From NCBI GenBank assembly GCA_002104905.1, contig MCFE01000044.1, positions 1 to 64,000 on the forward strand: DNA of 64,000 nucleotides. The letters run 5' to 3'. A program made the translations under genes and the position numbers. This DNA comes from Basidiobolus meristosporus CBS 931.73. Its lineage: Eukaryota > Fungi > Basidiobolomycota. Of the stretch, positions 2,025 to 57,400 are shown in pieces (position 1 is the first letter of the stretch; every line of letters begins with the position of its first letter). The notes under the pieces were generated by a model. That model ran no database searches. It saw only the letters and a list, made by a program, of their open reading frames with translations, and was not told the DNA's origin.

Positions 2025-2244
2025 GAGATTATCACCATTGCCATTGCCATCATTTCCAGTGCCATAACCACCAGGACCATTGTCACTACCGCCATTGCCA
2101 TTGGAACCCCCACTGGGTACATCTGTGACGTTGTAAGCTCCGTCACTCCTTGCCTGCAGTCTACTATCAAAAAGACTAAGCCGTAGCGTTGATTGCTGCT
2201 AAACTAGACAGGAGGTACAAGATTTTATGGGCATAAGGTTTCAA
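2025..2244 (-). pseudogene. Truncated pseudogene paralog of the Gly/Asn repeat protein
   Basis: Aligns to 5' end of 3667-5865 (LAAINA..., RLQARS.GAY.VTDV.SGG.NGNGG); ATG changed to TTG, in-frame TAG at 2176-2178, only about one repeat left. Confidence 0.85.
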
Positions 2245-2733
2245 CCTATTGTAGAAAGAGATGTATTACCCAGCGGGTGGCTTTATTTATCCCACTGGAG
2301 CCTCTATTTGTACCCACCCGCTGCTTTTCCTTTACGGAGGTACTCCACAAGCAAACTTATTAGGGTTAGGGTTATGTCTCATTAAGCCAGTTCAGTGTGT
2401 TTACTATCCGAATCAAACCAGATGCTTACCTACCAGCCTTACCATTAACTTGAACAGGGTACAGAGTCAACGCCTTATATGTTTATCCAGCATTTGTGTA
2501 TGATATCATAAATATTGGCCTATTAAGAGTGGCATTTGCATGGTTGATTTCGTTCAACTGAACTTGAGTAATATACCGCAGGGTTTTTTATCAGTGAGAG
2601 GTTTATTACATCAAACGGCGCACCGTTGCTGGTATGTTCTCCTGTAATAATGATTGAATGACAATATAGTGTTTAGAGTTCCTGAAGATTATTGATAGGG
2701 ATTTCTAATATATGCTGATATCAACCGAGTATT

Positions 2734-3440
2734 TTATGCACTTGCTATGATATCTTCAGCGACTTTCTGTGCCAACATGTGAATATACAACACCGGGAAG
2801 TATCCAGGGAGCATCCACCACACGCAGGCCTTTAGCGCCACGAACTTTGAATTTGGCGTCAAGAACCGCCATCACGTCCCCGTCTTCTCCAACTTTGGCA
2901 GTGCAGCAAGCATGGTGTCCCCAGGAGATTTCTTTGATGTACTGCTTCAATTGCTCGTCGGTGGTTACATTTTTACCGGGCAAGTACTCAGTGAACCTAG
3001 TCCAGATCGAGCCGCTGGTGCGCTTTCGCTGCTGGCGAATCTGGCTTACGATAGCATTCAGGTCATCATCACCGCCCTGTTCGAAGTAGTGAAAGTTGAT
3101 ATATGGAGTATCGAAGGGGTCGGTAGAGCTCAGACGAACAACTCCCGCCTTGTTCTTGGTATGCGCCTTGAGAATAATTTGGGAAAGGGCATCGGGATGA
3201 TCCGCTACAAGTTGGGAATATCCCTTAAAGTAGCCCTGAAAGTGGGCAGGGAAGTTCAGGGTGAACAGATCAGGCTCGGTCAAGCTTGATTTGGACTTGT
3301 CCATGAAGGCAGATAAGACTCCATTCGAGATATAAGGGCCTGTATGGTACTTGCGATACTCCTCGTAGCATGGATCGCTGGAATTGTCCCAGAATTTGCA
3401 GTCTTTGAGAAGGCTGAACTTACGGTCCCATTTGATAATC
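2734..3440 (-). pseudogene. GMC oxidoreductase, C-terminal half only, with a frameshifting deletion
   Basis: HHACCTAKVG..VLDAKFKVRGAKGLRVVDA motif; the true C-terminus PGYFPVLYIHMLAQKVAEDII lies in another frame; no N-terminal FAD-binding domain between here and the next gene. Confidence 0.8.
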
Positions 3441-3666
3441 TGTGTGCAGAACAGGAGTGGTGGTAACCCCGCTAGTGTAATCAGCAATGTACTGGTCGAG
3501 GTTGTGGCCGATACTAAACAGCACAAAATCCTCGTACTACTAATCTGCGCAATACTTTGAATAGCAGCTCTGACTGTGACAAAGGAATTACTGGATTAGA
3601 ATCAAGTTTATTAATAGCAATTATAAATACATAATGGTAAATACTGCTGTTGCTCTGATCTATAAT

Positions 3667-5865
3667 TTACTGGCAATCATCATTACCATTGCCGTTCCCA
3701 TTACCACCATTTCCGGAACCGTAGGCACCAGCTCCGTTACCACCAGTTCCATTACCATCTCCGTTACCTCTATTACCACCATCGCCATTTCCATCGCCGT
3801 TTCCAGCCCCGTTACTACCATTACCATTACCGCCGTTGCCATTGCCATTACCACCGTTTCCAGAGTCATATGCACCAGCTCCGTTGCCGCCGTTACCATT
3901 TCCACCATTGCCGCCGTTACCGTTGCCATTACCTCCGCTTCCAGAGTCATAGGCACCAGCTCCATTGCCGCCACTTCCATCTCCGCCATTGCCATTACCT
4001 CCGTTTCCAGAGTCATAGGCACCAGCTCCGTTGCCGCCGTTACCATTTCCACCATTGCCACCGTTACCGTTGCCATTACCTCCGTTTCCAGAGTCATAGC
4101 CACCAGCTCCGTTGCCGCCGTTGCCATTTCCACCACTGCTATTGCCACCGCTTCCATCTCCGCCATTGCCGTTGCCATTTCCACCATTGCTGTTACCGCC
4201 GTTTCCAGAGTCATAGGTACCAGCTCCGTTGCCGCCGTTACCATTTCCACCATTACCGTTTCCGTCTCCATTGCCACCACTACCGGTGCCGTTACCACCG
4301 TTTCCAGAATCATAGCCACCAGCTCCGTTGCCGCCGTTACCATTTCCACCATTACCGTTACCACCGTTTCCAGAGCCATACGCACCAGCTCCATTGCCGC
4401 CGTTTCCGTCTCCATTACCGCCGTTGTCATTACCATTACCTCCGTTTCCAGAGTCATAGGTACCAGCTCCTTTACCACTGTTTCCACCTCCACCATTGCC
4501 ATTGCCGTCGTTACCATTACCACCGTTTCCAGAGTCATAGGCACCAGCTCCGTTGCCACCGTTTCCATCTCCGCCATTGCCATTGCCGTCTCCATTGCCG
4601 CTGTTACCGTTACCTCCGCTTCCAGAGTCATAGGCACCAGCTCCATTGCCACCCTTCCATCTCCGCCATTGCCGCCCCATTGCCGCCCCATTGCCGCCGT
4701 TGCCATTGCCGTTACCACCATTTCCAGAGTCATAGGCACCAGCTCCGTTGCCACCGTTTCCATCTCCGCCACTGCCGTCTCCATTGCCGCCGTTACCATT
4801 ACCATTACCTCCGCTTCCAGAGTCATAGGCACCAGCTCCATTGCCACCACTTCCATCTCCGCCATTGCCGCCCCATTGCCGCCCCATTGCCGCCCCATTG
4901 CCGCCGTTGCCATTGCCGTTACCACCATTTCCAGAGTCATAGGCACCAGCTCCGTTGCCACCGTTTCCATCTCCGCCACTGCCGTCTCCATTGCCGCCGT
5001 TACCATTACCATTACCTCCGCTTCCAGAGTCATAGCCGCCAGCTCCTTTACCACCGCTTCCATTACCGCCGTTGTCATTACCATTACCTCCGTTTCCAGA
5101 GTCATAGGCACCAGCTCCTTTACCACTGTCTCCACCTCCACCTCCGCCATTGCCATTGCCGTTGCCATCTCCATTGCCGCCGTTACCATTGCCATTACCT
5201 CCGTTTCCAGAGTCATAGGCACCAGCTCCTTTACCACCGTTTCCATCTCCGCCATTGCCATTGCCGTCTCCATTGCCGCCGTTACCGTTGCCATTACCTC
5301 CGTTTCCAGAGTCATAGGCACCAGCTCCGTTGCCACCGTTTCCATCTCCGCCATTGCCATTGCCGTCTCCATTACCATTACCTCCGTTTCCAGAGTCATA
5401 GGCACCAGCTCCTTTACCACTGTCTCCACCTCCGCCATTGCCATTGCCGTTGTCATCTCCATTGCCGCCGTTACCGTTGCCATTACCTCCGTTTCCAGAG
5501 TCATAAGCACCAGCTCCGTTACCACCGTTTCCATCTCCGCCATTGCCATTGCCGTCTCCATTACCGCCGTTACCATTACCGTTACCTCCGTTTCCAGAGT
5601 CATATGCACCAGCTCCGTTGCCGCCGTTGCCATTTCCACCATTGCCGTTGCCACCGTTACCATTACCTCCGTTTCCAGAGTCATAGCCATCAGCTCCGTT
5701 GCCGCCGTTGCCATTTCCGCCATTGCCGTTGGCACCTCCACTGAATACATCTGTGACATCGTAAGCCCCGCCACTCCTAGCCTGCAGTCTTCTGTCGAAA
5801 GCTGCGGCGTTGATTGCTGCCAAACCAGAGAGGAAGCACAAGATTCTAGGAGCGGAGAATTTCAT
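3667..5865 (-). CDS. Secreted Gly/Asn-rich tandem-repeat protein, 732 aa, intronless
   Basis: Signal peptide MKFSAPRILCFLSGLAAINAAA, basic RRLQAR pro-segment, about 23 units anchored on GAGAYDSG, TATA box upstream, paralog nearby. Confidence 0.9.
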   Translation of the reverse strand: MKFSAPRILCFLSGLAAINAAAFDRRLQARSGGAYDVTDVFSGGANGNGGNGNGGNGADGYDSGNGGNGNGGNGNGGNGNGGNGAGAYDSGNGGNGNGNGGNGDGNGNGGDGNGGNGAGAYDSGNGGNGNGNGGNGDDNGNGNGGGGDSGKGAGAYDSGNGGNGNGDGNGNGGDGNGGNGAGAYDSGNGGNGNGNGGNGDGNGNGGDGNGGKGAGAYDSGNGGNGNGNGGNGDGNGNGNGGGGGGDSGKGAGAYDSGNGGNGNDNGGNGSGGKGAGGYDSGSGGNGNGNGGNGDGSGGDGNGGNGAGAYDSGNGGNGNGNGGNGAAMGRQWGGNGGDGSGGNGAGAYDSGSGGNGNGNGGNGDGSGGDGNGGNGAGAYDSGNGGNGNGNGGNGAAMGRQWRRWKGGNGAGAYDSGSGGNGNSGNGDGNGNGGDGNGGNGAGAYDSGNGGNGNDGNGNGGGGNSGKGAGTYDSGNGGNGNDNGGNGDGNGGNGAGAYGSGNGGNGNGGNGNGGNGAGGYDSGNGGNGTGSGGNGDGNGNGGNGNGGNGAGTYDSGNGGNSNGGNGNGNGGDGSGGNSSGGNGNGGNGAGGYDSGNGGNGNGNGGNGGNGNGGNGAGAYDSGNGGNGNGGDGSGGNGAGAYDSGSGGNGNGNGGNGGNGNGGNGAGAYDSGNGGNGNGNGGNGNGSNGAGNGDGNGDGGNRGNGDGNGTGGNGAGAYGSGNGGNGNGNGNDDCQ

Positions 5866-5926
5866 TCTATTGTAAAAGGAGATATACTACTGAGTGAGAT
5901 GTCTTGATTTTACCAACTAGAGTGCC

Positions 5927-5934
5927 TATTTATA
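5927..5934 (-). promoter_or_regulatory. TATA box of the Gly/Asn protein gene
   Basis: TATAAATA about 60 nt upstream of the ATG at 5865. Confidence 0.65.
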
Positions 5935-9865: not shown

Positions 9866-10417
9866 TCAGTACGCATTGTAATTTTGATGGGTGCGGTCGT
9901 GATTCGCGTGGCTGGCGTGGCTGGACTTTCCTCGAGCCCAGCCATTTCCTCCGTTACCGTTCCCTCCGCTTTTTTGCTTGGTGTTTCCTTTGTTTTGTGA
10001 ACCCTGTCCTGAGCCTGATGCGCTTGAGAGCTTCTCAACTTTGTCAGTGATCTTCGTTAGACGTTCGGCCAAGTCTTCATTCTTGGCGACTGCCTCGGTG
10101 ATCTGGCCACCGGTCTGCGACGTAGAGGCTTGAATCTTGTTGGCAGAGGTCTCCAGGTCATCTACATTCTGACCCAGGTTGTGGACCGCCAGATTCAAGC
10201 CAAGCTTGTCGCCTCCTACCTTCAGGTCCAGACCGCCAAGGCTCCAGTCGTCGGATAAAGGCGAGTCAGTCTTGCTGAGCACGTCATCAGTTATAGAGAT
10301 ACCAGCTTTACTGACCAAGTCATCCAAAGCACCCAGGGAGCCGTCCAAAAGAGAGCCAGATGGAAGGCCATAGGTGGATCCAATTACAGCGAGAATAGAG
10401 ACAATGGAGAGTTGCAT
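9866..10417 (-). CDS. Secreted protein copy 1 (183 aa from MQLSIV), His-rich tail
   Basis: Signal peptide MQLSIVSILAVIGSTYG-LP; TATA at 10491-10498; near-identical paralog at 11138. Confidence 0.88.
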   Translation of the reverse strand: MQLSIVSILAVIGSTYGLPSGSLLDGSLGALDDLVSKAGISITDDVLSKTDSPLSDDWSLGGLDLKVGGDKLGLNLAVHNLGQNVDDLETSANKIQASTSQTGGQITEAVAKNEDLAERLTKITDKVEKLSSASGSGQGSQNKGNTKQKSGGNGNGGNGWARGKSSHASHANHDRTHQNYNAY

Positions 10418-10490
10418 CGCGGAAAGTGGATCAGTTAGTTGGATGACTCGGTCAAACAAGGTTCGAGGTGACAATCGATGAGTTCGGCAC

Positions 10491-11137: not shown

Positions 11138-11680
11138 TCAGTATATCTTATACCCCTGATGCGCTTGGCCGTGGCTTGCGTGACTGGGCTTTCCTCGAGC
11201 CCAGCCATTTCCTCCGTTACCATTCCCTCCGCTTTTTTGGTTGGTGTTTCCTTTGTTTTGTGAACCCTGTCCTGAGCCTGATGCGCTTGAGAGCTTCTCA
11301 ACTTTGTCAGTAATCTTCGTTAGACGTTCGGCCAAGTCTTCATTCTTGGCGACTGCCTCGGTGATCTGGCCACCGGTCTGCGACGTAGAGGCTTGGATCT
11401 TGTTGGCAGAGGTCTCCAGGTCATCTACATTCTGACCCAGGTTGTGGACCGCCAGATTCAAGCCAAGCTTGTCGCCTCCTACCTTCAGGTCCAGACCGCC
11501 AAGGCTCCAGTCGTCGGATAAAGGCGAGTCAGTCTTGCTGAGCACGTCATCAGTTATAGAGATACCAGCTTTACTGACCAAGTCATCCAAAGCACCCAGG
11601 GAGCCGTCCAAAAGAGAGCCGGATGGAAGGCCATAGGTGGATCCAATTACAGCGAGAATAGAGACAATGGAGAGTTGCAT
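11138..11680 (-). CDS. Secreted protein copy 2 (180 aa from MQLSIV)
   Basis: About 5 differences from copy 1 over ~545 nt, different C-terminal tail; TATAAAAG at 11754-11761. Confidence 0.88.
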   Translation of the reverse strand: MQLSIVSILAVIGSTYGLPSGSLLDGSLGALDDLVSKAGISITDDVLSKTDSPLSDDWSLGGLDLKVGGDKLGLNLAVHNLGQNVDDLETSANKIQASTSQTGGQITEAVAKNEDLAERLTKITDKVEKLSSASGSGQGSQNKGNTNQKSGGNGNGGNGWARGKPSHASHGQAHQGYKIY

Positions 11681-12679
11681 CGCGGAAAGTGGATCAGTTA
11701 GTTGGATGACTCGGTCAAACAAGGTTCAAGGTGAATGTGTGTGAATGGAAAGCCTTTTATACATAGCCAGGAGAAATCCCCTTGGTTTGAAACATGCGTA
11801 GATGCCATCCACACGAGATGACTGTAACATGTCAACCTTCGGGAGATTTATGCTGTGTCAATACAAATGATCTGCCCTCCTGAAGTCGCCTTGAATGATT
11901 CGGTTCAATGGTGGATGTGCTCAGGGATGGGAGCAATAACGGCCGGTCACGTGCCTACGAGGAAATATGTAATCATTCCCATGGAGGAACGATTTGCAAC
12001 ACAATGTCACAAGAATACTCTTGGCCCTCTAGACTAGATTTACAGGATAAATCTCAAAACTGTCTGTCAGACATTGTAGCGGTAGTGAAGGTTACTGGGG
12101 TTTTGTGGTTGTTTGCTAGTGGGCAATACTGAATTTTGTAAAACTCCTTAGGATGTAGTGCGAGCAGGTGATTCAAGTGAGGTTCGTTTGCCAAACTCAA
12201 ACATGCTCAACCGACTCGAGGATGGCAGTTCATTCTATAGTGTACTAGGAACTAAACAGAACCATAAGGCAGTTCTCCACTTTGGATAATACCCTTCAAA
12301 ATACCCACTTGGTAAAAGTCAGCTCAGAGAAACCCACTTGCTGACTCCCACTCACCTACCTCATTTCCAGTCCCTTGAAAGGATAGCCTCTTTGGTTGAT
12401 CAGACACAACAAAAGTCAGTATGACCCGAACAGATTCTCACCCAAAGCCTCTCTAATCCACATTGCTCATATCACTGTAGAACTGACGAGATCGCCGAGA
12501 GGTATGGTACGCTGAAATGCCAGTCTAGAATTTGGAGCTGAACCTATTTCTTAGCCTGAAGGCACTACCGAAGTTACATGAAGGGCTACTTCTGGATGAG
12601 CTGGTTCGAAACCCGCCCACGTCATGAAAGCGTCACTAGCAAACTCGATCCTGGACATTTATTGAATAAATTGATAAAA

Positions 12680-14056
12680 TCAAGAGCTTCGAGCACAGGC
12701 GCGTGGATGCGCCCACAGTTGGCTCATCCCAGGAGACCGGATATTCGCTTTTAGTTTGGTGGTTTCGCAAGCCAGGAATGGGTTGAACAGGCCGTTGGGG
12801 TCACCATAGTGCTCGTTCACTGTTCTTACTACGTAGCTTCCCTTGGCATCATATCTCCCCTTGAGCGTGTGAGCGATCACATACTCGGTCGCTCTACGAA
12901 TGGCCTGGTTATTGGATTCCCAACCATTGAAGCCTAATGCCTCGCCTAATTTGGCGAGGTAGATAAGTGCCTCCAGATTGAAGAACATGTACTTTACGTA
13001 ATCGGCTCGCTCGGCCTCAAGTGGCTGGTCGCCGTCAGCAGTAATCTGTCCAGGGATCTTCTGGGCAAAGAAAGCCTCCAGGTAGCCTCTGGCCTCCTCA
13101 TTCCTGTTGATAAACCTCAAGTAGGTGCACAGTTGGACGTGGTAGTAGGAGCAATGGTTGTTGTCACAGCTGAAGGCTTTGCGACCGATCTCACTGTGGA
13201 GCATCCATTCCACCAGCGCAGAAAACCACTGCTGGATGGCCAGATATTCCTGGCGATAGCGTTCTGTATAAAGTAACGGAAGCGTGTTGGTCACCTGGGT
13301 TAAGGCTCGGACCCCGATAAGTCCGGTTAGCTCTCCACTGGATGACCAGTTGGGTCTGATCTGGCCGTACTCAACATTAGGGTTCATGCGAGTACTCTCG
13401 TCGACGAAGAAGACCCGCAACAAGGTCCACGCGTGATCCAAGTATCTCGGCTCCGAAGTGAATGCATACCCGAGTGCGAGGTTTGTCACCTCACTACACA
13501 TGTCCTCGAGTTGCCTCTGGCAGGGCAGCTCGTCCACCCGGGGATTTTTCTTACCGTCCCTGCGAACGTAGGGTGCGGTGGCTGGGTCGGCCGCTTTTTC
13601 GTCCGGCCAGAAGTAGGGTGCGTGGGAGACGAAATCACGCGGGTCGTTCGAGGGTGGTACGTGGGGGTTGCAGGTGATGGTGAACGGTCCTTTCTCGAGG
13701 GACTTCTTGGCTGCTTTTTCAAGTTGGTTCAGTTTCTCTTTTGGAAGCAGGCTTCTATCTGCCGCTTGCTGCTGAACCGCCTCATAGTCAATAAAGCGAA
13801 CATACGGCTCGTTCGGTGCAACTAATGCTTGGAGTGGAGGCTCAGCCGCTGGGCGAACAGGTATGGGTGGTGTAGAGGCGGGCTGATTTGCAGGAGGACG
13901 TGAAGGGATAGCTGGTGTAGATATAGGTTGGTTTGCAGAAGGTCGAGGGGGAACGACGGGCTTGGCGGCGGTTGGGTTCATTGTTGGGGGAAGGGTAATA
14001 CCTACGCTCTCTAGCTTCTCGGAGACACGGTGAATTTTTTCCTTTAGCTTATCCAT
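12680..14056 (-). CDS. Alginate lyase family (PF05426-like) protein with Pro-rich N-terminus, no signal peptide, intronless
   Basis: DFVSHAPYFWPD, PYVRRDG.KNP, MNPNVEYGQ, NNH and Y.FFNLEAL motifs typical of the family. Confidence 0.88.
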   Translation of the reverse strand: MDKLKEKIHRVSEKLESVGITLPPTMNPTAAKPVVPPRPSANQPISTPAIPSRPPANQPASTPPIPVRPAAEPPLQALVAPNEPYVRFIDYEAVQQQAADRSLLPKEKLNQLEKAAKKSLEKGPFTITCNPHVPPSNDPRDFVSHAPYFWPDEKAADPATAPYVRRDGKKNPRVDELPCQRQLEDMCSEVTNLALGYAFTSEPRYLDHAWTLLRVFFVDESTRMNPNVEYGQIRPNWSSSGELTGLIGVRALTQVTNTLPLLYTERYRQEYLAIQQWFSALVEWMLHSEIGRKAFSCDNNHCSYYHVQLCTYLRFINRNEEARGYLEAFFAQKIPGQITADGDQPLEAERADYVKYMFFNLEALIYLAKLGEALGFNGWESNNQAIRRATEYVIAHTLKGRYDAKGSYVVRTVNEHYGDPNGLFNPFLACETTKLKANIRSPGMSQLWAHPRACARSS

Positions 14057-14908: not shown

Positions 14909-17900
14909 ATGGCTGCCATTGTACGGGCCTTATACGACTTCGATTCTGCAGACGATTCAAGCTTAAAATTCAAGAAGGGTGATGTTATCGAAGTAATTAC
15001 ACGTTTGGATTCAGGCTGGTGGGATGGCCTCTGCAATGGGATAAGAGGCTGGTTCCCATCCGAATTTGTAGTTCCCCTTGAAGCAGAAGAAGTCGAGCAT
15101 GACGAACAGGTAAGCGACGTTGCGCGGGGAATCTGGAGGAGCTCATCCTTCCAGAAGGGATCTCGGGCCTAACTCCTCCTATCTAGGGTAACGAGCAAGA
15201 ATATTTTAACCAAGTCGACCCCAGCACGAACCGGAAGCTTAGCCACACATATTCCGTAGAGGAGAGCTATGGAAACGAGATCAACCTGCCAGAGAACTGG
15301 ATCACTCATTCCGCTGAAGATGGAACCTTCTGGTACTACAATAGCGTTACAAAAGAAACCCGGTGGTCATACCCGGGGACGCCTAGCCAAAGCGACGCTC
15401 ACCCGACGCAAGGGGAGAATGGAACCAGCATGTTGCAGGACAAAAACAGCAGTGGGGTGGAAGTACCCTCCTTCCGCAAGGCAGCTCGTTCAGCCAGTGA
15501 CGATAAGGTTTGTGTCTTGCTTGGCAATGGGAGCCGTATTCTATGGTTAATCTATTGGGATAGCAGCTACCTCCCAACTGGAAAGAGAAGAAATCGCCCA
15601 ACGGCCGTACATACTACTTCAACATGGTCACCGACGACACAACGTGGAATCTCAACGAAGTGGATTGGGAAACAGGCTTGATCGTAAGTACTGGTATCTA
15701 CCGAGTCTCTGGATCGTTACTTACCCAACACCAGTTTAACCAAAACAAGGCGAGCACCAAAAGAAACTCCGCAGTGTCCACCTCCTCTGGATCATCCCTG
15801 GGGAATGACAATCCTTCGATTGGAGCGGGGGGCCCTCCCTCGTACCCAAAGAACCGCCGGCCCTCAGGGTTTGTGGGGCCCATGGACTCGGAGGGAAGCA
15901 TCCTGCACTTCAACTGGGCCAGATTGACCGCAAACATAGTTCTAGCCATTCACCGTCTGAATCACTCCTCCAAGCGCAATATGAAAGGGTACTTCATTGA
16001 GCAGGCCTCGGCCATTGTTGAAGCGGTAAGAGTGATGTTTGTTTCCTCTCGCACCGAGAGTATGGACTCCCCCGTGCTGAACGCACACCCCATGCTGAAA
16101 GCCCATCACCACCATGTGTTCAACTCCCTGTGCCGACTGGTCCTCTCGGCTCAATATGCCTCCATTGTCTGGTGCGCGCCTGATGCGGTCTACAAGATGC
16201 AACAAGACGCCAACGAGGTGCTGCTTGCTACCAGACACTTCATCACCGTCGCCCAAGACAACGGAGTCGACATTCGCAGCATCGACCGCGCAGAGCCCGA
16301 GGGTGGGGAGACGGGTAGATATGATGAGGGTGACCTTGCAGAGGCGGACCCCAATTCGGAATTTATCCTGGACAAGTCGGGAGCTCACACAGACATACTG
16401 ACGGAGCTTTTGGCCTGCTCCGGCTCGGTAGCCAGGTCAACAAACCAGCTGATCAAATACCTCATCATGGGGGATTTCAAGTCTGCCTCCCTGGTTGCGT
16501 TCATGAAGCAAGCCATCGCGGAGATCGGCCAGCTTCTAGCATTGACCGACGACATGGATGTGGAGAATGTCGACGAGACGATCGTCCGTGACTTTAAAAT
16601 CTGCAAGCAGTATGTCTACAACAACATCGCCATTCTGGTGGCCATCACCCAACGGGCCACCGAGAACTTGGCTCCCGAGAATATCTCCGAACAATTGCTG
16701 GAATGTGCCCGCCAAGTGGAGCTGTCGGTGAAGGAGCTGATTATCGCCAGCAAGTTCGTCATCCACGAGAAGGAGATGTACGAGCAGGTGTTCTTGGCCG
16801 AGAAGTACCGCAACCACACCAACCCGAACACCCCCGAAAACACTTTCCGCCCCCGTCGTGCCATGTCCTTGTCGTTTTTGGGCCGACACGTTGACCGGGC
16901 CTATGGGCTGGGTGCTGACGGGGAGAACAGCGCCGTCCCTATCCGTCGGAGGATGGATTCGCACGCGAATATCACCGACTCTATGGACATCCTGCACGAG
17001 GAAGAACCAGAGCTCCCCACAAACAACAAGCAGAAAGAGAAGCTCAAGAAGTTCTTTGGCGACGATGCCCCAAACACCGTGGTGACCAAGAGCGCCAGCG
17101 ACGAGCGACCATGGTACCTCGAATACGACTACGCCCCCAGTGACGTCGTATTCAACATGGAGGGCCAAGTGAAGGGCGGGACCTTGGTAGCATTGGTAGA
17201 ACGCCTTACGCTCCACGACCTGTTAGGTAGGCGAACACCCCCGGGACATTCTGCGATGACTCGACTAACCGTATTTCAAACACAGATTCCACCTTCATCG
17301 CCACCTTCCTGCTAACTTATCGCTCGTTCACCACCACGGAGGATCTATTCGAGCTCCTTTTTGAGCGGTTCAATATCCAGCCACCTGCCGAGCTAACCAA
17401 CGAGGAACACGAGATCTGGACCGAAAAGAAACTTGTCCCGATCCGGCTAAGGTAATGTTGCGGTCAGAAATGTAGCCATGGTCAGGCGGGCCACTAACCT
17501 GCCAGACAACCAGAGTGTTCAACATCATGAAGAGCTGGCTCGAGAGCTACTATCTGGAAGGCGAAGACGACTTCGCTCTAGAGGTCCTGAAGAACTTCGC
17601 CCAGGACAAGATGCAGGAGGTCATGCAGTTCGCCTCCAACCAGTTGATCAAGCTTATTGAAAAACGAGTGAGTCCCCTTCGCCCTCCTCAGCGAGCGCAA
17701 CCTACCCGGCTAACCACGTGATCTAGATGTCCTCTGAAGGGAACTTCCGAAAGATGGTGCTCAACATGAGCCGCGAGGCCCCGCTCCCCATTCTCCCTAG
17801 AAACATGAAAAAGCTGAAGCTGCTCGAGATCGACCCCATAGAGATCGCTCGCCAGTTCACCATCATGGACTCCACCATGTACAACAAAATCAGACCTGTC

Positions 17901-19730: not shown

Positions 19731-20106
19731 ATCTGTTCTCTTCCTGTTCCGCAGCGAGCGAGCTTTCTTCGACAATAAACTTTTCTTGTCTTCTATTCTA
19801 CCTTCTTGGGTTATGTGTGATGGATGGGTGTGTATGGTGGTTAGGATGCGGTGCTGGAATCGGATATTCCAGAATGCATCAAGGGATCGGGATTAGTCAA
19901 CGTGGGGAGATTTGGAAGCTCCTGAGCGTTGTCTCGGATAATCCATATCATGGACGACCTGTGTGCTACTTCCCCAATCAATTGGTATTACTATTCTTGA
20001 TGCCAACATTTTCGTACACTAGCCAATTCTCCTGTCATCCTACAGCTAATTAAGCGAGTCCTCATCCCAACCTTGGCTTCGTTTCCACTCACTGACACCC
20101 CAAACC

Positions 20107-22439
20107 ATGCCCCCTCTCTTTAGATACCTCTCCAGACCGGCGCTCAGAAACACCAGGTTCTGGAACAGTAGGCCCACGGCCTTGATGACCCCCCACGTGC
20201 TCAAAACCGCCTCTCGAACCGCCACCGTAAGATATTTAAGCGGCGGGCAGGAAAATGCTCTGCACGCTACGCCCGTCCTTGAGAACGGAAACCGGGTTGA
20301 GAGGGAGCCCAGTGGGAAAACGTCAGGTATTTAAACCACCCGGTCTACACGGTCAACCCTGCCGGTTCCGGCGAGACTGTTCACCATGTCCGTGGTTCTC
20401 TCCACTGAGCCAGGTTTGTTTTAGAACACGACGGGCCGATCGCGACGTACGACAAGCTGGTCACCTCGGGGGTGGTGAACGACGACAGCTACCAACGCTC
20501 CGTAGTTCAACTACTGGAGGATTTGCATACCGAGTTGAAAACCTACCACCCCGGACTGAGCCCGGCCGTCCAGACATCTTTCTTCTCAAAGGTAAGCGTG
20601 CGTGTGTGCGTGTGCCTGTCGTTTGGCCGGTAGTAATGTGTTCGCTTCGTCACCCCTTCCCCAGTGGTTTGGCAACACGACTGCGTCGCGGAGCAGCGCA
20701 CCCAAAGGTTTATACTTGTAAGTAGGCCGAGGTAGGGGAACTTCGATTTGACACTATGGATGCTGACTGTTGTGCTCTAGGTATGGTGACGTGGGTAAGT
20801 GGTGGAGCGCTTCAGGCTGCCCTCGGTTCCGTGGAATTCACTCCCTCCCCTTCCTGTTAGGAACCGGCAAGACCATGCTGATGAATCTGTTCTACGACAC
20901 GCTGCAGATCCAAAGGAAAAGACGGATCCATTTTCACGCCTTCATGCTAGACGTGCACTCAAGTAAGCCCCCTTCAGGGTGTGCCAACGATCAGGGACCA
21001 ACTCCCGCCTGATTGCTTGCTCTCGATGTAGGAATCCAGAAGCTGAAGGATCGTGAAGGGGCCATCGAGGATCCAATCCCGCCCATCGCCCGAGATCTCG
21101 CCGATGAAGCGTACGTCCTCTGCTTCGATGAGTTCCAGGTAAGTTCCCCGGGGTGCCCACCGCCGACCACGCCATTCATACGCCACCATCCAGGTCACCG
21201 ACATCGCCGACGCGATGATCCTCCGTCGACTCATCTCCAGTTTGACCGAACACGGGGTCGTGATCGTGACGACGTCCAACCGGCATCCAGATGGTATGTC
21301 CTCGTGCATCCGGCTACCATGGGCACCCTCCAAACTAACCATCCCACTTCCCCAGAGCTTTACAAGAACGGGATCCAGAGAAAGAGCTTCATCCCCTGCA
21401 TCGAGTTACTGAAAGAGAAGTGCAAGGTGGTCGCGCTGGATTCTGGAACGGATTACCGTAGACTTGGTAGGTTTCCTCCACGGATCACCCCTTCGGCCAT
21501 AGACCAACTCGATTCCCCCTTTAGCCAAAGAAGCGGACCGGGTTTTCTTCAGGTAGGTCGATCCCCCGCCCTCCCACTCAAACCCACGTCCCAATCACCC
21601 CTCCATCTCACCGCGTATTCTTCTACCTTCTAGCCCCCTCACCAAGGAAAACACGGAGAGCGTCCAGAAGATTTTCGATCGGTTGTCTCAAAGCCAGCCA
21701 GGTAACTACTTCGTGACTCATCACTCAGTCTGGGCACATCCGACAGACCGTCCTAACCTACATCACATCAACCAGTCAAGCCGAAGGTCCTCGAATTCCT
21801 AGGCCGCAGTCTGGTGATTCCTGAGTCGGCGGGCGGTGTGGCGAAGATCAGCTTCCAAGAGCTTTGTGGCGAGGTACGACCCCCTTCCCCCTTCCACAAA
21901 CCTAACAGGCTGACGGTTGTTTTCGCAGGCGCATGGGGCGGCGGATTACCTCGAGCTGGCCAAAAACTTCCACACCTTGGTTCTCACGGACATGCCCAAG
22001 ATGAATCTCAGCCACCGGAACGAGGCCCGACGATTCATCACACTGCTGGATGCGTTATATGAGAATCACGTAATTCCCCTTCACCATCCCCTCGTTCGAC
22101 CCGACCTAACCCTTCCCCATCCTCCTTCCCCTTCATCTTTAGGTCGTGCTCGTCTGCAGCGCCGAGGACGATATCCTGAACCTCTTCTCCCCCGACAAGC
22201 AACTCGACCACGAGTCCAACGACCATAGGATGCTGATGGATGACCTGGGCCTTTCCAACCAGCAGGTAAGTCCCTTCCTGAACGTTCCGGTCGCTCTCAC
22301 GTGGGACTAACTCGGGGACCAGCTGTCCAGCCCGATCTTCTCCGGGGAGGAGGAGATCTTCGCTTTCCAGCGTGCGGTCAGTCGTCTGATAGAAATGCAA
22401 GGGCAGAGCTGGTTGAGCCGCAACCGCAGCCACGCTTGA
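20107..22439 (+). CDS. AFG1: AFG1/LACE1-like mitochondrial ATPase, multi-exon
   Basis: Spliced [18 protein letters not shown] (Walker A), [52 protein letters not shown]. Confidence 0.93.
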
Positions 22440-22554
22440 CTTGACCGGGTGGAAACCATGTGAACCAACAATAAACCGATGTATCATTCACCAGCCAAAT
22501 CGAATCCTCGCCAGTGCATAGTTTATTTGGGTGCGATTGGGAGGGGAGGGAGGC

Positions 22555-22626
22555 CGCAGTGGTGGGGAAGGGACAGGGGACAGGGAAAGGGAAAGGGACG
22601 GGAACGGGGGCATGGAAAAGGGGGCT
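22555..22626 (+). repeat. Degenerate G-tract array between convergent AFG1 and MEMO1 3' ends
   Basis: GGGGAAGGGACAGGGGACAGGGAAAGGGAAAGGGACGGGAACGGGGG. Confidence 0.8.
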
Positions 22627-22645
22627 GGTATTGCTTGGGCAGGAT

Positions 22646-24086
22646 TCATGCGGGCACAGGGAGAAAGATGTAAGCGGAGGCGTAGCTCACGGAGCTTTCG
22701 TTGGGTCGCTGGACCCGACTCGATTGGGAGTAATGTATGAAGCGAATGATCGGCCCGGTGGATGCGTGGTTTCCATCGAGAATGGTAGGCTCGGGGGTTG
22801 GTTGCGGCCAACCTTCGATCGCCGCCAGCACCACTCCGATCGGATGCCTACCGCAGATGGTGTTCTTCGTGCGACCCAGGTATTCGACGAACCTCTCATG
22901 GTTCACCTCCTCGATCACCGCCATCCCTTCCCGGTCGAGGCGTTCGATCGATTCGTAGATGGGGATGCTTCTCTCCCGGGTCCGGGTGACGTCCGACGGG
23001 GCGGTGCTGGGCTTCTCCGCGGTGGAGTAGAACGTGTACGAGAATCGCGATCCCCTGGAGAATGAAGAATCGTGGTGAGCTACGGGATCAAGACGTCGGG
23101 CTCATTGGTCCCCTCACCAGTGGCAGAAATCGGAGGAGATCACGAAGAAATTCTCCGGGTCGGCGAGGTAGTCCTGTAGCAACCGACCGTACGCCTGCTC
23201 TTTGCTGGCCGTCAGGGCCCCCACCAGAATCGGGACCAGGGTGATCTGGTCCACCTTGCTGCGAGGGAAAGGGAGCGGAAATCCCGGGCGTCAGCGAACA
23301 CCTACTCCACAAGAAGACACAGGGACGCCCTTGGCGCGCGGCTCTTACCTTTCGAACGTCTTGTAGATGTAGGGAAGATGCATCTCGAGGCTGTGCTCGT
23401 CCTCGTCCACCGACCGGCTCATGGTGGTGAACTTCCCGGTTTCCACCAGTGCCTCGCACACTAAATACCAAAATTCCCCGCCGGTTCAGCCGCCGTACAA
23501 CCAGTACCACCACCCACAACTACCACGGCGGCCACGGAGGACCCCTATCCGCTTACCTTCCTTGTCCACCGACAACGACCCCAACGGGGTCTCGTAGGTG
23601 TCGCACTTCGAGACCGCGCACCCGCTCAAGTATACGTGGTGGGACGGGCCAAGGATGAAGACCCGTTTGCTGGAGGGGAAGGGAGGGAAGGGTTTGGTGA
23701 GTGGGGGCTCGTCACTATCACTATCACTGTCACCGTCACCGTCATGGCCACGGTCACGCCGAACTTACATGGTCTCCACGTCGATGCATTTGTAGGCGTA
23801 CGCGGCGGCCTGACCGCTGTACGTGTACCCGGCGTGACTAGATATCATGAGAAGGGAAAGGGGTCGAGGTTAGTGAGCGGTCCAAGTGGTAGGGAGGGGT
23901 AAAGTCGTGGAGTAAGGTTGGATTCCATGCGTACGGTGCGATCACGGCTCTGGCCCCTTTCACCGGGACTTTGACCCCCTCGGGGCTCTCCTCCGGTACC
24001 CTTCCCAGCCAGGTGGTCAGCTCCTTGTCGAGCTGGCCTCCGTGGCCGGTGTACCAGGAGTTCGCGTGGGTGGCTTTGCGGTGCAT
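22646..24086 (-). CDS. MEMO1: MEMO1 family protein, multi-exon
   Basis: [69 protein letters not shown]. Confidence 0.93.
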
Positions 24087-27900: not shown

Positions 27901-30000
27901 AGCTTGTTCTGCTACTCCATTTTGCTGTGGGGAGTATGGTACAGCAGACTCTTGCTTTATCCCATGAATGTTGCAGAAGTGGATGAAGAGTTTTGAGGTA
28001 TATTCTCCACCATTGTCAGAGCATATTTTCTTGATTTTTTCACCAGTTTCTCTCTCCACCATGACTTTAAACTCCCTGAGCTTAGACAGAGCTTCTTCCT
28101 TTCTCTCCATGAAGTAGACCCATGTGTATCTTGTATAATCATCAATAAAAGTGATTAAATACTTCATCCCGCCTAAGGATAAATTTTGCATAGATCCACA
28201 CAGATCTGAGTGAATTAGATCTAATTTTTTCTTAGTTTTGATTAACCCAGAGCTCTTGAACGGTTGTCTGGCTTGTTTCCCATATATGCAGGCTTCACAG
28301 TGCTCCAAATTAGCTGCAGATCAATTTTCACTCCAGAAATTAGCTGATCTTTGATTATTTTGCATAAATAATCAAAATTGATGTGCCCAAATCTCCTGTG
28401 CCAAAGCATTGGTGTTTCTTCATTTAAGTTACTTATATTGGCTTCCAAATATGATGGAATATAAGTCAACTTGTATAGATTCTGATCTCTGATGCCCAAT
28501 GCAATATGGGCACCATTTTGATCAGTGATCCTGCATCCAGAATTGTTAAAACTGAAACTGAGTCCTTCTGCTGTGGCCTTGCTTACAAAGAGTAGGTTCT
28601 TGGCTATTTCTGGTACATAGAGTACTTCTTTAAAGGTCAGTGTATGGCTTCCTTCACTGCTTCTAAAGTTTACTTGGATAGTTCCTTCTCCCACTGCATC
28701 AAGTGTTCTATCATCAACCATGAAAACCTTCTTAATTGGAATTTCTTGATATTGGGTAAAAAGTTTTTTTTGGTGTGTAAAGTGTTGAGAAGCTCCAGAG
28801 TCAATATACCACGTCTGAGAATCCTTGTTTGTGGTCATATTTAGTGCAGATATGAATAGTCTATCTTCAGTTGTTGCGGCCATTCCATAATCAGGCTTCT
28901 TCTGCTGATTATCTTTCTTTTTGAGACACCAGTCTGATGTGTGTCCTTTCCTTTTGCAGTAGTTACAAAACAGGTTGCTGTTGCCTTTGTAGGGTCTTGG
29001 GTACCTCCTTTGCTGGTTATCATTGCTTATTAAAGCATTTTCTTCTCCCTTCTTATTTGCGCTTGATTTTCTTAATTCTTCATCCAGGAGCCTTTCATAT
29101 ATGTAATTTAAGGTCAAATCTTCTGTTCTGGACTCAAGGGCTGATACAAGGCCTTGAAACTTGTCTGTCAGGCTATTCAGGATGGTATCTATCACATCCT
29201 CATCAGTAGTTGGTATGCCCACAGATTCATCTCATCCACCAGCAGGGTAATTCTGTTAATTAAATTTTTCATTTCTTCTCCTGGCAGCATCTTTGTAGTA
29301 AAGAATATTTGTCTCAGATGCATTATCTTGGCAGCTGAACATGACTGGTAGGTGTCTTCCAATGCTTTCCAGGCATTCTTTGCCGTTTTTGCTCTTGAGC
29401 ATTGAATAAGCAATTTGTCCTTGACATTAAGGCAAATGCAGTTAAAGGCACTTTGTTCTTTCTTCTGGCACATTAAGGCTTCCTCTCCCACATCTTTAGG
29501 AGGGCATTCATCTCCCATGACAATATCCCAATGGGTTCATCTTCACCTTCCACACTGGGTAGTTAGATCCATCCAACTTTTCAGCAGAGGCAGAAATTCC
29601 AGTAATAGCAGTAGTAGAGATTGCAGTGAGTGACAGCTTGGGGCTCATAACCTGCTGTAAGAGTCTTGGAGATATTGGAAGTGATTGGAAGGACAAGTAG
29701 ATTATGTGGTTTTCACTTAATGATTTATTGAATGTAAAAGTAGTATTTATACTTTTACCTAGTCATGGCATTACAAACACATAGAATAGGTTACAGGAAG
29801 GTCCCAAGAGCATGTGTGCAAAGTTTGGGGCTGTTTGGACAACTTTGAGAATTTTCATGTTCTGGGTACCTGGTATTTTGGTGAAAATATTCTAAGTAGA
29901 TCCCAACAAGGAATTTGGTCAGTATTTGCTAGGATTTGGGGTAATGATCTAAGTGACTAAGTCAGGTGAATATTTAGGTGGAATTACAAATTTTACAACA
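24987..30000 (-). mobile_element. Ty1/copia family A element, frameshifted gag-pol; LTRs 24987-25335 and 29653-30000
   Basis: PBS GGTTATGAGCCC (29641-29652), PPT 25336-25346; CX2CX4HX4C-like knuckle, WYIDSGAS protease, rve integrase, YVDDL RT, ADWG/EAEY RNase H in copia order. Confidence 0.95.
25582..25930 (+). mobile_element. Family A solo LTR inserted antisense into the RNase H of the host element
   Basis: TGTTG...CAACA with perfect 5-bp TSD GAAAT; removing it restores TLFQDNPGCIQLGRNPTFHARTKHIDIRHHF. Confidence 0.95.
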
Positions 30001-54483: not shown

Positions 54484-57400
54484 TGTTGCAATTCAAGAAG
54501 TGACTTGGATATAAGGAACTTATCAAGAAATAGTGATAATAGTTGAACTGTTGTTTATTCACAAAGAAGCTCAGTATTTATACCTTTGTAGAAGTAATAC
54601 AGCTGTAACACTGAGTAGGGAGGGTTTTTCAATATTCAGGAGCATTCTGTAACAGTTTCAGGGTTGGTACATAATGTTTGGTAATAGTGCTAATTTGATC
54701 CTGACTATAGGGGAATAATCATAAGATCATATATCTGGAGAAAGTGGCAAAGTCAAGGCAGTAAATGAGTCCTACAGTGACTAAGACTAGTCTACAATTG
54801 TTAAGTAAGTTTTCAGCTGCTGAATGATACCAAATAGTCCAATATTTCAACACTCCCCCTCAACTAACTAATTTCTTTATCCCAATTTCTCTCTAAGGAT
54901 CTTAAACTGTGGCCTAGCTAGTGGTTTTGTCAAAATGTCTGCCGCCATTTTGTCAGTAGGGCAGTAAACTAACTCCACCAAGTTATTTTTTACAGCTTCC
55001 CTCACAAAGTGATGCTGTATATCAATGCGCTCAGTTCTGGCATGATTAGTAGGATTTCTAGCTAATGAAATACAACTTTGATTATCCTTGTAAATACATG
55101 TTGGTTCACCTGAATTGAAACCCAAGTCTTTGAATAATTTTTGTAGCCATATAGCCTCCTTAGTTGCTTGACATGCAGCCATATATTTGGCTTCAGTTGT
55201 AGATAGTGCAACAGTTGGCTGTTTCTTGCAATTCCAAGTAATAGCTGCACCAGCATAAAGAAATACATAGCCTGTGGTAGAGTGTCTGTCAATCAAATCC
55301 CTACCCAATCTGATGTTGCAATTTAAGAAGTGATTTGGATATAAGGAACTTATCAAGAAATAGTGATAATAGTTGAACTGTTGTTTATTCATAAAGAAGC
55401 TCAGTATTTATACCTTTGTAGAAGTAATACAGCTGCAACACTAAGTAGGGAGGGTTTCTCAATATTCAGGAGCATTCTGTAACAGTTTCAGGGTTAGTAC
55501 ATAATGTTTGGTAATAGTGCTAATTTGATACTGACTATAGGGGAATAATCATAAGATCATATATCTGGAGAAAGTGGCAAAGTTAAGGCAGTAAATGAGT
55601 CCTACAGTGACTAAGACTAACCTAGAATTGTTAAGTAAATTTTTAGCTGCTGAATGATACCAAATAGTCCAATATTTCAACACTCCCCCTCAACTAAATA
55701 ATTTCTTAATCCCAATCTCTCTCTAAGGATCTCAAACTGTGGCCTAGCTAGTGGTTTTGTCAATATGTCTGCCACCATTTTGTCAGTTGGGCAGTAAACC
55801 AGCTCCACTAAGTTATTTTCTACAGCTTCCCTCACAAAGTGATGCTGTATATCAATGTGCTTAGTTCTGGCATGATTAGTAGGATTTCTAGCTAATGAAA
55901 TACAACTTTGATTATCCTTGTAAATACATGTTGGTTCACCTGAATTAAAACCTAAGTCTTTGAATAATTTTCGTAGCCATATAGCCTCCTTAGTTGCTTG
56001 ACATGCAGCCATATATTTGGCTTCAGTTGTAGATAGTGCCACAGTTGGTTGTTTCTTGCAATTCCAAGTAATAGCTGCACCAGCATAAAGAAATACATAG
56101 CCTGTGGTAGAGCGTCTGTCAATCAAATCCCTACCCCAATCTGAATTACTATAACCATCATATTTTTGCCTATTTGCTGCTCCAGAGTATTCCAGTACCA
56201 TATTTATGGTACCTTGTAGATATCTGAAAATCCACTTAACTGCTGCAATTTGATCTGATCCATAATTCTGCATGAATTGACTGACTATTCCAACTGCTAC
56301 TGCAATATCTGGACGTGTAGACACCATCAAGTACATTAGGCTACCAACCATTGAATGATAGGGAAAGTTTTGGTCCATATTTGAGCCGTTTTCATCTATA
56401 ACTGGCTGAGATTTGCTTAATTTCAGGTTATTGTCCATAGGGGTTGCTGCAGGTTTGCAATTTTCCATTTTGAAGCGTCTAAGAATGTCCCTGATGTACT
56501 TAGACTGATTCAGCACAATTTTCTGCGTAGGTATGTCAAATTTGACCTCAATTCCAAGAAAATAGCTCAATTTTCCAAGATCTTTCATCTCAAACTTGCT
56601 GAAGAGATCTGATTTCGTCTGTTTAAGTGCCTCTTGATCACTTGTAGCTATAATTAGGTCATCCACATAAAGAACTAGGATGATCACATCCTTTTTGAGC
56701 TGTTTCACATATATACTGTGATCTGCAGTGCTACAAGAGAACCCAATTTCCTCTAGATATGTGTCAATCTTGTTATACCATGCTCTGGGTGCCTGCTTAA
56801 GCCCATACAATGATTTTCTAAGTTTGCACACCTTATGGGGGCTTTTTGGATTGGTAAAACCTTCTGGTTGCTCCATATATATAGTTTCTTGCAAATCCCC
56901 ATTTAGAAAGGCTGTTTTGACGTCCATTTGGTGTAGATCTAGACTGTGTACAGCTGCCAGGGCTAGAACTGTCCTAATAGAGTTAAACTTGGCAACCGGA
57001 GCAATTGTTTCCTTAAAGTCTAGTCCCTGGATCTGGGAATAGCCTTTAGCTACCAATCTAGCCTTGTACTTATCAACAGCACCATTTGAGGTTATCTTGA
57101 TCTTGTAGACCCATCTACATCCTATTGGCTTTCTCCCATTTGGTAAATCTACCAGTTCCCACGTTTTTGCCTTGATCAGTGATTGGTACTCCTCCTGCAT
57201 GGCTTGTTGCCACTTAGTAGCATCTGGACCTTGCATTGCCTGTTCCAGATTCTGAGGTTTGGCACATAAGGCAAGATAAGCTTCTTCATGATTATTGGAT
57301 GTCTGCCACCAGGATCCAGGGGCATTTCTTATTCTGGTAGATCTCCTAACTGGGATAATCTGCTCTGATCTGGAACTGGTAGAAGTATCTTCCATCTCTG

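Follow-up and report, generated by a model that had tools for sequence, protein, structure and literature searches.

The 64,000-nucleotide stretch of DNA analyzed here, which we call the window, comprises positions 1 to 64,000 of contig MCFE01000044.1 from Basidiobolus meristosporus CBS 931.73, a fungus of the frog and lizard gut. Its minus strand carries, at positions 3667 to 5865, an uninterrupted open reading frame (ORF) of 732 codons that runs from an ATG to a TAA stop codon and that we describe as a complete, single-exon coding sequence. The predicted product, termed here the Gly/Asn protein, consists largely of glycine and asparagine, with a signal-peptide-like N-terminus followed by a long array of repeats, each built around a single tyrosine. 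We consider it very likely that the ORF is a real gene, because it is flanked by a TATA box and an AATAAA element, its ratio of nonsynonymous to synonymous differences (pN/pS) is specific to the frame, a frameshift within the array is compensated, and the N-terminus is conserved in Basidiobolus ranarum.

Evidence for the Gly/Asn reading frame

The assignment of the coding sequence draws on the ORF list, on frame-wise pN/pS, and on the start codon and N-terminus that it has in common with a B. ranarum protein, KAK9709718.1. Three further features were read directly from the sequence: a TATA box (TATAAATA; 5927 to 5934, minus strand) lies 69 nucleotides (nt) upstream of the ATG, the start codon has an A at position −3, and an AATAAA polyadenylation-type signal (3607 to 3612, minus strand) lies 55 nt past the stop codon.

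When the 22 anchor blocks of the repeat array were aligned in the Gly/Asn frame, 3, 4, and 12 columns were variable at codon positions 1, 2, and 3, respectively, and pN/pS was 0.17, a value computed from repeat copies that are not independent samples. Stop codons close only two of the six frames across the array; of the four open ones, the Gly/Asn frame alone has a ratio below 1, and the other three gave values of 4.07 (the in-phase antisense ORF), 7.95, and 1.69. One further frame has a low pN/pS and is closed by a stop codon in every unit. The in-phase antisense ORF (3634 to 5907, plus strand), whose product would be rich in Ile, Thr, Ser, and Val, was dismissed as the coding frame on the basis of its pN/pS and of the promoter and polyadenylation signals, which fit the minus strand.

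The low ratio in the Gly/Asn frame stems mainly from the Gly and Asn codons that flank the anchor. The anchor codons themselves (GGA GCT GGT .. TAT GAC TCT GGA) are almost invariant among the 22 units even at wobble positions, while the adjoining Gly and Asn codons vary freely. Possible causes of this invariance at synonymous sites are homogenization by unequal crossing-over, a constraint at the DNA or RNA level, and codon selection. In the codon count, GGG accounts for 2% of the 347 Gly codons of the gene, compared with 20–35% in three of four comparison ORFs of the window and 4% in the fourth, a small secreted-protein gene at 9866 to 10474. Such low use of GGG fits either translational selection or the avoidance of slippery runs of G.

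Layout of the protein and its repeat array

The 732-residue protein contains 347 Gly (47%), 165 Asn (22.5%), 54 Asp (7.4%), 52 Ala (7.1%), 45 Ser (6.1%), and 23 Tyr (3.1%). Glu is absent, and the sole Pro is residue 6, in the signal segment. Over all 80-residue windows along the chain, the fraction of Gly ranges from 0.29 to 0.55.

Residues 1–22 (5800 to 5865, minus strand) form the signal-peptide-like segment that the initial annotation had recognized: K2 and R7 precede a hydrophobic core at residues 8–22 (mean Kyte-Doolittle value of 2.0), which ends in A-A-A (residues 20–22) before the predicted cut. By inspection, an n-region, an h-region, and an A-x-A c-region are all present, and the same layout is kept in the B. 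ranarum homolog. The non-repeat N-terminal segment that follows (residues 23–45; 5731 to 5799, minus strand) reads F-D-R-R-L-Q-A-R and then G-A-Y-D-V-T-D-V-F-S-G-G, and it holds the first tyrosine, Y35. The initial annotation had termed this a basic pro-segment; an Arg-rich segment is indeed present, but it is only partly conserved, with R-Q in B. ranarum in place of R-R, and dibasic processing is therefore doubtful. Only two dibasic K/R pairs occur in the whole protein, namely R25-R26 in this segment and residues 401–402, which belong to a frameshift relic described below. The C-terminal tail (residues 719–732; 3667 to 3711, minus strand) completes the chain, which ends G-N-G-N-G-N-D-D-C-Q, and no hydrophobic C-terminus of the glycosylphosphatidylinositol (GPI) type was found there. 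As had been noted from the start, the Cys in the terminal D-D-C-Q (residue 731) is the sole Cys of the mature chain; the only other one, residue 10, lies in the signal segment.

The mature chain, taken as starting after a cut near A22, has 710 residues with a computed mass of ~60 kDa, a pI of ~4.05, a grand average of hydropathy (GRAVY) of −1.32, and a net charge of −38, with all of the negative charge coming from Asp. It contains five N-x-S/T sequons and no more than 11 Lys and Arg residues in total. The very high Asn-Gly content reported in the initial annotation amounts to 155 NG dipeptides, and if all of these were deamidated, the computed charge would go from −38 to about −193. Asn-Gly is both a strong β-turn former and the fastest-deamidating dipeptide, and in flexible chains it deamidates within days at neutral pH; strings of turns and a time-dependent acidification are therefore plausible properties of the chain. 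AlphaFold2, run on the single sequence, returned a coil with essentially no secondary structure and a predicted local distance difference test (pLDDT) score of 36.6 for residues 22–257 and 26.7 for the whole protein, and low confidence obtained from a single sequence is not equivalent to proof of disorder. The models are consistent with a mature chain that is intrinsically disordered and lacks a stable fold.

Residues 46–718 (3712 to 5730, minus strand) make up the repeat array, which consists of 22 units of 22–49 residues. Each unit has a conserved core of ~28 residues, from −12 to +15 around its one Tyr, followed by a Gly/Asn/Asp spacer of variable length. The spacing from Tyr to Tyr is likewise 22–49 residues, with a mean of 30.9 and standard deviation of 6.2. 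About 23 units with a fixed eight-residue GAGAYDSG anchor and variable spacers had been proposed initially. The Tyr-anchored array and the variability of the spacers were borne out, but the count falls to 22, since the 23rd Tyr is Y35, outside the repeats, and the conserved element is the ~28-residue core rather than an eight-residue anchor. The exact G-A-G-A-Y-D-S-G sequence occurs in only 14 of the 22 units; the other eight carry one-residue variants (GADGYDSG once, GAGGYDSG three times, and GAGTYDSG and GAGAYGSG twice each). A single Lys stands at −5 from the Tyr in only five units.

At the DNA level, the 24-nt anchor sequence occurs 21 times with up to 3 mismatches, compared with 0 expected from 100 shuffles, and it was found nowhere else in the 64-kb window. 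Tandem Repeats Finder identified nested periods of 66–288 nt, among them a duplication of 207 nt whose copies are 96% identical, and the units share 60–96% DNA identity, including very recent duplications. The Gly/Asn/Tyr family probably evolves via unequal crossing-over inside the array.

Two 11-nt microsatellites lie within the array. The first, with four copies of the coding-strand unit GGCGGCAATGG (4862 to 4905, minus strand), is read through in three frames and gives rise to an odd A-A-M-G-R-Q-W insert. After the second, with three copies (4654 to 4698, minus strand), four codons are out of frame (R-R-W-K), and the loss of 1 nt then restores the frame. Each of the two 207-nt duplicate units holds one of these microsatellites, and a codon-by-codon comparison of the units places the compensated frameshift in the second of them, where one 11-nt copy and the single nucleotide are missing (11 + 1 = 12 nt lost). 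The microsatellites are, in their own right, a small natural case of frame compensation within a coding repeat.

Relatives and genomic surroundings

Among 1.84 billion protein representatives, an exhaustive phmmer search at E values up to 0.001 identified one true relative, KAK9709718.1 (E = 1.3e-17), which is recorded for B. ranarum as 'hypothetical protein K7432_008854, partial' and has 96 residues; no long relative was detected, and none was found outside Basidiobolus. By BLASTP, residues 1–42 align with KAK9709718.1 without gaps at 55% identity and 79% similarity (E = 2e-15), and tblastn with the B. ranarum protein matches every unit of the array. The two proteins have in common the M-K-F-S start, the signal peptide, a segment comprising R-x-L-x-A-R and G-A-Y-D-V-[ST]-D-V-F, and A-Y-D-[ST]-G-N-G-G-N-G anchor repeats set in Gly/Asn spacers. 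They differ in that the B. ranarum record is cut off at 96 residues, its spacers are richer in GGG, and it has Thr for Ser in the anchor and R-Q for R-R. Four other phmmer matches were dismissed as relatives: these have runs of GGNGT, GNGNGN, or GNRGTG joined to other domains, and they lack the Tyr anchor and the shared N-terminus.

No Pfam family was detected at E values up to 1, and the Gly/Asn protein had no match among PDB sequences or ESM Atlas features. It was also missing from a collection of 15 billion proteins by exact look-up. A homologous-protein search with either the whole protein or residues 1–60 returned none, under a length filter of 403–1281 residues that would hide the 96-residue KAK9709718.1. 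A metagenome scan with a degenerate pattern of the conserved N-terminal segment gave 4 chance matches, none of them with a Gly/Asn array following. The initial description of an uncharacterized, apparently secreted Gly/Asn polymer with periodic Tyr thus stands, with no match in Pfam or PDB sequences or, beyond Basidiobolus, among the 1.84 billion representatives. As far as HMMER sees, the protein would belong only to an unnamed, Basidiobolus-restricted family defined by the shared N-terminus and the anchor. Literature searches on Basidiobolus returned nothing on glycine-rich secreted repeat proteins of such a kind, nor did they yield a paper on a comparable fungal protein.

The neighboring alginate-lyase ORF (12683 to 14056, minus strand) encodes a protein that matches one from B. 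meristosporus CBS 931.73 at 100% identity, which confirms the species of origin; its identity to a B. ranarum protein is 72%. The Gly/Asn protein, in contrast, was absent from the public collections searched. Its gene appears to be missing from the public protein sets for the B. meristosporus genome, and its absence may reflect repeat masking.

About 1.5 kb downstream of the gene lies a relic paralogous copy (2028 to 2330, minus strand), delimited by six-frame reading, DNA alignment, and tblastn (E = 7.5e-15), with 75% column identity. It comprises the promoter, 5′ leader, signal peptide, N-terminal segment, and one or two Gly/Asn/Tyr units. The TATA element of the relic is kept as TACAAATA, its ATG has changed to TTG, a 7-nt insertion carries a stop codon, and its Tyr context is G-P-G-G-Y-G-T-G. 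That the intact copy kept its signals and start codon while the relic decayed argues that the intact copy is maintained. Between the two copies, at 2756 to 3526 (minus strand) and only 140 nt from the stop codon of the Gly/Asn gene, is an ORF for the C-terminal half of a GMC oxidoreductase (PF05199, E = 5.7e-19), without the FAD-binding half. The last residues of the enzyme are encoded in a different frame, a sign of either a frameshift or a short intron, and the ORF is probably a 5′-truncated remnant. The presence of half an oxidoreductase gene between the two copies indicates that the locus was rearranged. A peroxiredoxin gene also neighbors the Gly/Asn gene.

Several other features were observed in the window. 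Two near-identical genes stand in tandem at 9866 to 10474 and 11138 to 11722 (both minus strand; 98% identity over 300 nt) and encode proteins of ~195–200 residues with an internal, signal-like M-Q-L-S-I-V-S-I-L-A-V start, a tail with G-G-N-G-N-G-G-N-G, and no Pfam match. The alginate lyase gene has a single exon and a PF05426 domain; beyond B. ranarum, its best matches are 30–35% identical and come from metagenomes and the bacterium Acerihabitans, which makes the gene a candidate for bacterial origin. A 563-residue ORF at 15624 to 17315 (plus strand) contains a DUF7783 domain (E = 9e-36) of no known function. The region from 20000 to 24000 has a GC content of 55–60%, compared with 30–50% around it, and contains a fragment of an AFG1-like ATPase, along with numerous ORFs that overlap one another on the two strands. 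Fragments of Ty1/copia-type retrotransposons, with gag, integrase, and RVT_2 domains, are located at 28242 to 29222, 55677 to 58649, and 59958 to 61070, all on the minus strand.

Proposed role and comparison with known systems

We propose, with moderate confidence, that the Gly/Asn protein is a structural component of a coat, glue, or elastic material outside the cell, in which it would act as a disordered polyanion with Tyr 'stickers'. After removal of its ~22-residue signal peptide, the protein would be secreted as a 'stickers and spacers' polymer of 22 cores, each presenting one Tyr in A-Y-D-S-G, on flexible spacers of the GGNGN type. The evenly spaced tyrosines could give cohesion, either non-covalently or through oxidative Tyr-Tyr cross-links, while the Gly/Asn spacers would supply hydration and entropic elasticity and the terminal Cys might serve as one disulfide tether or dimer link. 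Candidate materials include the matrix of a wall or coat, a mucilage or glue, and an elastic layer of spores or conidiophores. The initial annotation had suggested spore discharge, adhesion, or a surface coat as putative roles. In Basidiobolus, pressurized 'rocket' conidiophores rupture along a circumscissile line, and capilliconidia with adhesive material on the beak are described within its family, Basidiobolaceae (PMC13370150). The rupture line of the conidiophore and the beak of the capilliconidium are candidate sites for the Gly/Asn/Tyr protein.

A number of observations weigh against this proposal, at the level of the gene or of the material. DNA rich in GGN and AAY has few stop codons, which explains the four open frames over the array, and the Gly/Asn ORF alone therefore proves little. 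The repeat copies that entered the pN/pS test are related to one another rather than independent, and because the anchor codons are invariant even at wobble positions, the conservation of the anchor inside the gene, as far as its DNA can tell, reflects concerted evolution at least as much as selection at the protein level. The only known homolog is a 96-residue fragment, and the public protein set for B. meristosporus does not include the Gly/Asn protein. The disorder of the chain is read from a single-sequence model of low confidence, with the limit stated above. In the vicinity, no gene for a tyrosinase, laccase, or peroxidase was seen, and a strongly acidic chain without cationic or hydrophobic blocks is no obvious adhesive alone. 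A further reading, which we regard as improbable, makes the protein the polyanionic partner in a complex coacervate outside the cell: via its 22 Tyr and its Asp charge, it would condense with polycations or Ca2+ into droplets that are sticky or elastic, the adhesive of the capilliconidial beak being one example, with the spontaneous deamidation of up to 155 Asn-Gly sites as a clock that cures, swells, or dissolves the material. If true, such a coacervate would be a fungal, Pro-free, and DOPA-free counterpart of the glue chemistry of sandcastle worms or mussels.

Two alternatives are each unlikely in our view. One takes the product to be a real secreted protein that acts mainly as a soluble polyanion, with the Tyr incidental, as a buffer of Ca2+ or metals, a coat that keeps surfaces hydrated or prevents desiccation, or a protection from cationic peptides of the host or of bacteria in the gut; its active groups would be Asp, together with the Asp and isoAsp formed by Asn-Gly deamidation. 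The 54 Asp without any Glu, the net charge of −38 and pI of ~4.05, and the 155 NG dipeptides are as such a role would have them, and many spacers read G-D-G-N-G-G-D-G, recalling the acidic G-X-N stretches in shell-matrix proteins. However, it is the Tyr core that is conserved most, both within the gene and between species, whereas the Asp-bearing spacers vary in length and sequence; the hydrophobic position that completes the RTX-type calcium motif GGxGxDxUx is absent, and the Pfam search returned no calcium-binding family. The other, to which we assign a similarly small probability, regards the ORF as a young minisatellite that is expanding fast and has little if any selected function, a lineage-specific orphan that would be weakly expressed or silent and open mainly since GGN/AAY-rich DNA is poor in stop codons. 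The four open frames, the 60–96% DNA identity among units with very recent duplications, and the toleration of slippage products such as A-A-M-G-R-Q-W within the array all agree with such an origin, as do the dead 5′ copy 1.5 kb away beside a truncated GMC oxidoreductase, the retrotransposon fragments elsewhere in the window, and the lack of the gene in public annotations. Against it, only the Gly/Asn frame among those open has a pN/pS below 1, the frameshift is compensated within 12 nt, GGG codons are strongly avoided, and the core promoter and polyadenylation signals have stayed intact, while in the relic the ATG is gone; moreover, B. ranarum retains the start, the signal peptide, the N-terminal segment, and the anchor, at a distance where the neighboring enzyme is 72% identical.

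Two other readings are, we believe, highly improbable. The very high Gly content and the many GGX tripeptides could suggest an ice-binding or rigid surface protein made of polyglycine-II helix bundles, an analogy to snow-flea antifreeze protein (AFP) and PE_PGRS that the initial annotation had drawn. At lag 3, however, the autocorrelation of Gly is −0.04, and its peaks fall at lags 2, 5, 7, and 12; the longest stretch that has a Gly in each third position spans 4 triplets, and the chain tokenizes as 92 GN and 65 GGN, so that its basic rhythm is a GGNGN pentad, which removes the sequence basis for such bundles. The single-sequence AlphaFold2 model shows no bundle either, although its low confidence does not prove that one is absent, and there are no paired Cys to staple one. 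The analogy is thus not upheld. The remaining reading, of equally slight probability, is a polyprotein precursor cut to ~22 small Tyr-containing peptides in the manner of Kex2-processed repeat proteins, of which B. meristosporus has the most among the surveyed fungi (43; PMC7329392). A signal peptide followed by many near-identical units, in a species this rich in such precursors, would suit that model, but no dibasic site lies between the units (the only K/R pairs being those at residues 25–26 and 401–402), a unit length of 22–49 residues is unlike that of a peptide precursor, and even the single Lys at −5 from the Tyr is confined to five units.

The proposal of a structural polymer places the Gly/Asn protein within a known kind. 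Secreted Gly-rich chains with spaced Tyr arose independently in insects (resilin), in plants (glycine-rich proteins [GRPs] of the wall), in molluscs, and in spiders, as elastic, adhesive, or framework materials. The Gly/Asn protein would be a fungal example of these secreted, tyrosine-spaced structural polymers, none of which turned up in the literature searches for that kingdom. To our knowledge, the molecular materials of the Basidiobolus 'rocket' conidiophore and of the glue-tipped capilliconidia of its family are undescribed. Should the protein form part of one of these materials, it would represent a Pro-free, Asn-rich design for an elastomer or glue and provide a natural test of massive Asn-Gly deamidation as a timer. 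The gene also shows that long, low-complexity genes can escape fungal annotation.

The closest compositional class is that of the silk-like proteins. The SilkSlider criterion, a secretion signal together with an 80-residue window of at least 25% Gly, picked out material-forming proteins across animals (McDougall et al. 2016, PMC4944945), and the proteins so defined are typically lineage-restricted and independently evolved (PMC4944945). The Gly/Asn protein reaches this Gly threshold, and like the silk-like proteins, among them shematrins and other Gly/Tyr-rich matrix proteins, it is modular, repetitive, and lineage-restricted. The class is compositional and validated in animals, and is not a homologous family; the Gly/Asn protein differs from it in being fungal, Asn-rich, Pro-free, and strongly acidic.

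Several of the other systems compared are set apart by a defining feature. The initial annotation had likened the protein to resilin and nacrein, and in both cases the composition is alike while the defining domains are absent by Pfam. Nacrein is a carbonic anhydrase domain interrupted by a G-X-N triplet repeat; the Gly/Asn protein lacks that domain, and its rhythm is a pentad. PE_PGRS proteins have a PE domain and are mycobacterial, whereas the Gly/Asn protein has no Pfam match and comes from a fungal genome. Snow-flea AFP has Gly at each third residue and forms a bundle, in contrast to the lack of triplet periodicity here. What nacrein, PE_PGRS, and snow-flea AFP share with the Gly/Asn protein is runs of Gly combined with Asn or Asp. 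Kex2-processed repeat proteins carry dibasic sites between their units, where the Gly/Asn units have none, and the hydrophobic C-terminal signal of GPI-anchored fungal wall proteins does not occur in this chain.

Three systems resemble the Gly/Asn protein more closely. Insect pro-resilin (Drosophila CG15920) is a Gly-rich chain that is exported and disordered, as the Gly/Asn protein is predicted to be, and each of its short repeats sets a single Tyr amid G, S, D, N, and A. The Tyr of resilin form di- and trityrosine cross-links. Pro-resilin has a Rebers-Riddiford chitin-binding domain (PF00379), which the Pfam search at E values up to 1 did not detect in the Gly/Asn protein, and its repeats contain Pro (of the G-G-R-P-S-D-S-Y-G-A-P-G-G-G-N type), whereas the mature Gly/Asn chain is free of Pro and has almost no Arg; the Tyr spacing is ~31 residues as opposed to ~15 in resilin, and there is no sequence homology. 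Plant class I glycine-rich wall proteins (such as Petunia GRP1 and bean GRP1.8) start with a signal peptide, continue as a nearly pure Gly-X polymer in which Tyr are scattered, are deposited in the wall, and are probably insolubilized via their Tyr. These proteins, from another kingdom, are built on (GGX)n with few Asn or Asp, in contrast to the GGNGN pentad and long conserved Tyr core of the non-homologous Gly/Asn protein. Prion-like low-complexity domains such as that of hnRNPA1 combine Gly, Asn, and Ser with evenly spaced aromatic 'stickers' that drive condensation. They are intracellular and near-neutral, whereas the Gly/Asn protein begins with a signal-peptide-like segment and its net charge is −38, and its self-condensation would therefore need counter-ions or a cationic partner. 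As far as sequence comparison can tell, the likeness of the Gly/Asn protein to resilin, plant wall GRPs, and prion-like domains is one of design, not descent.

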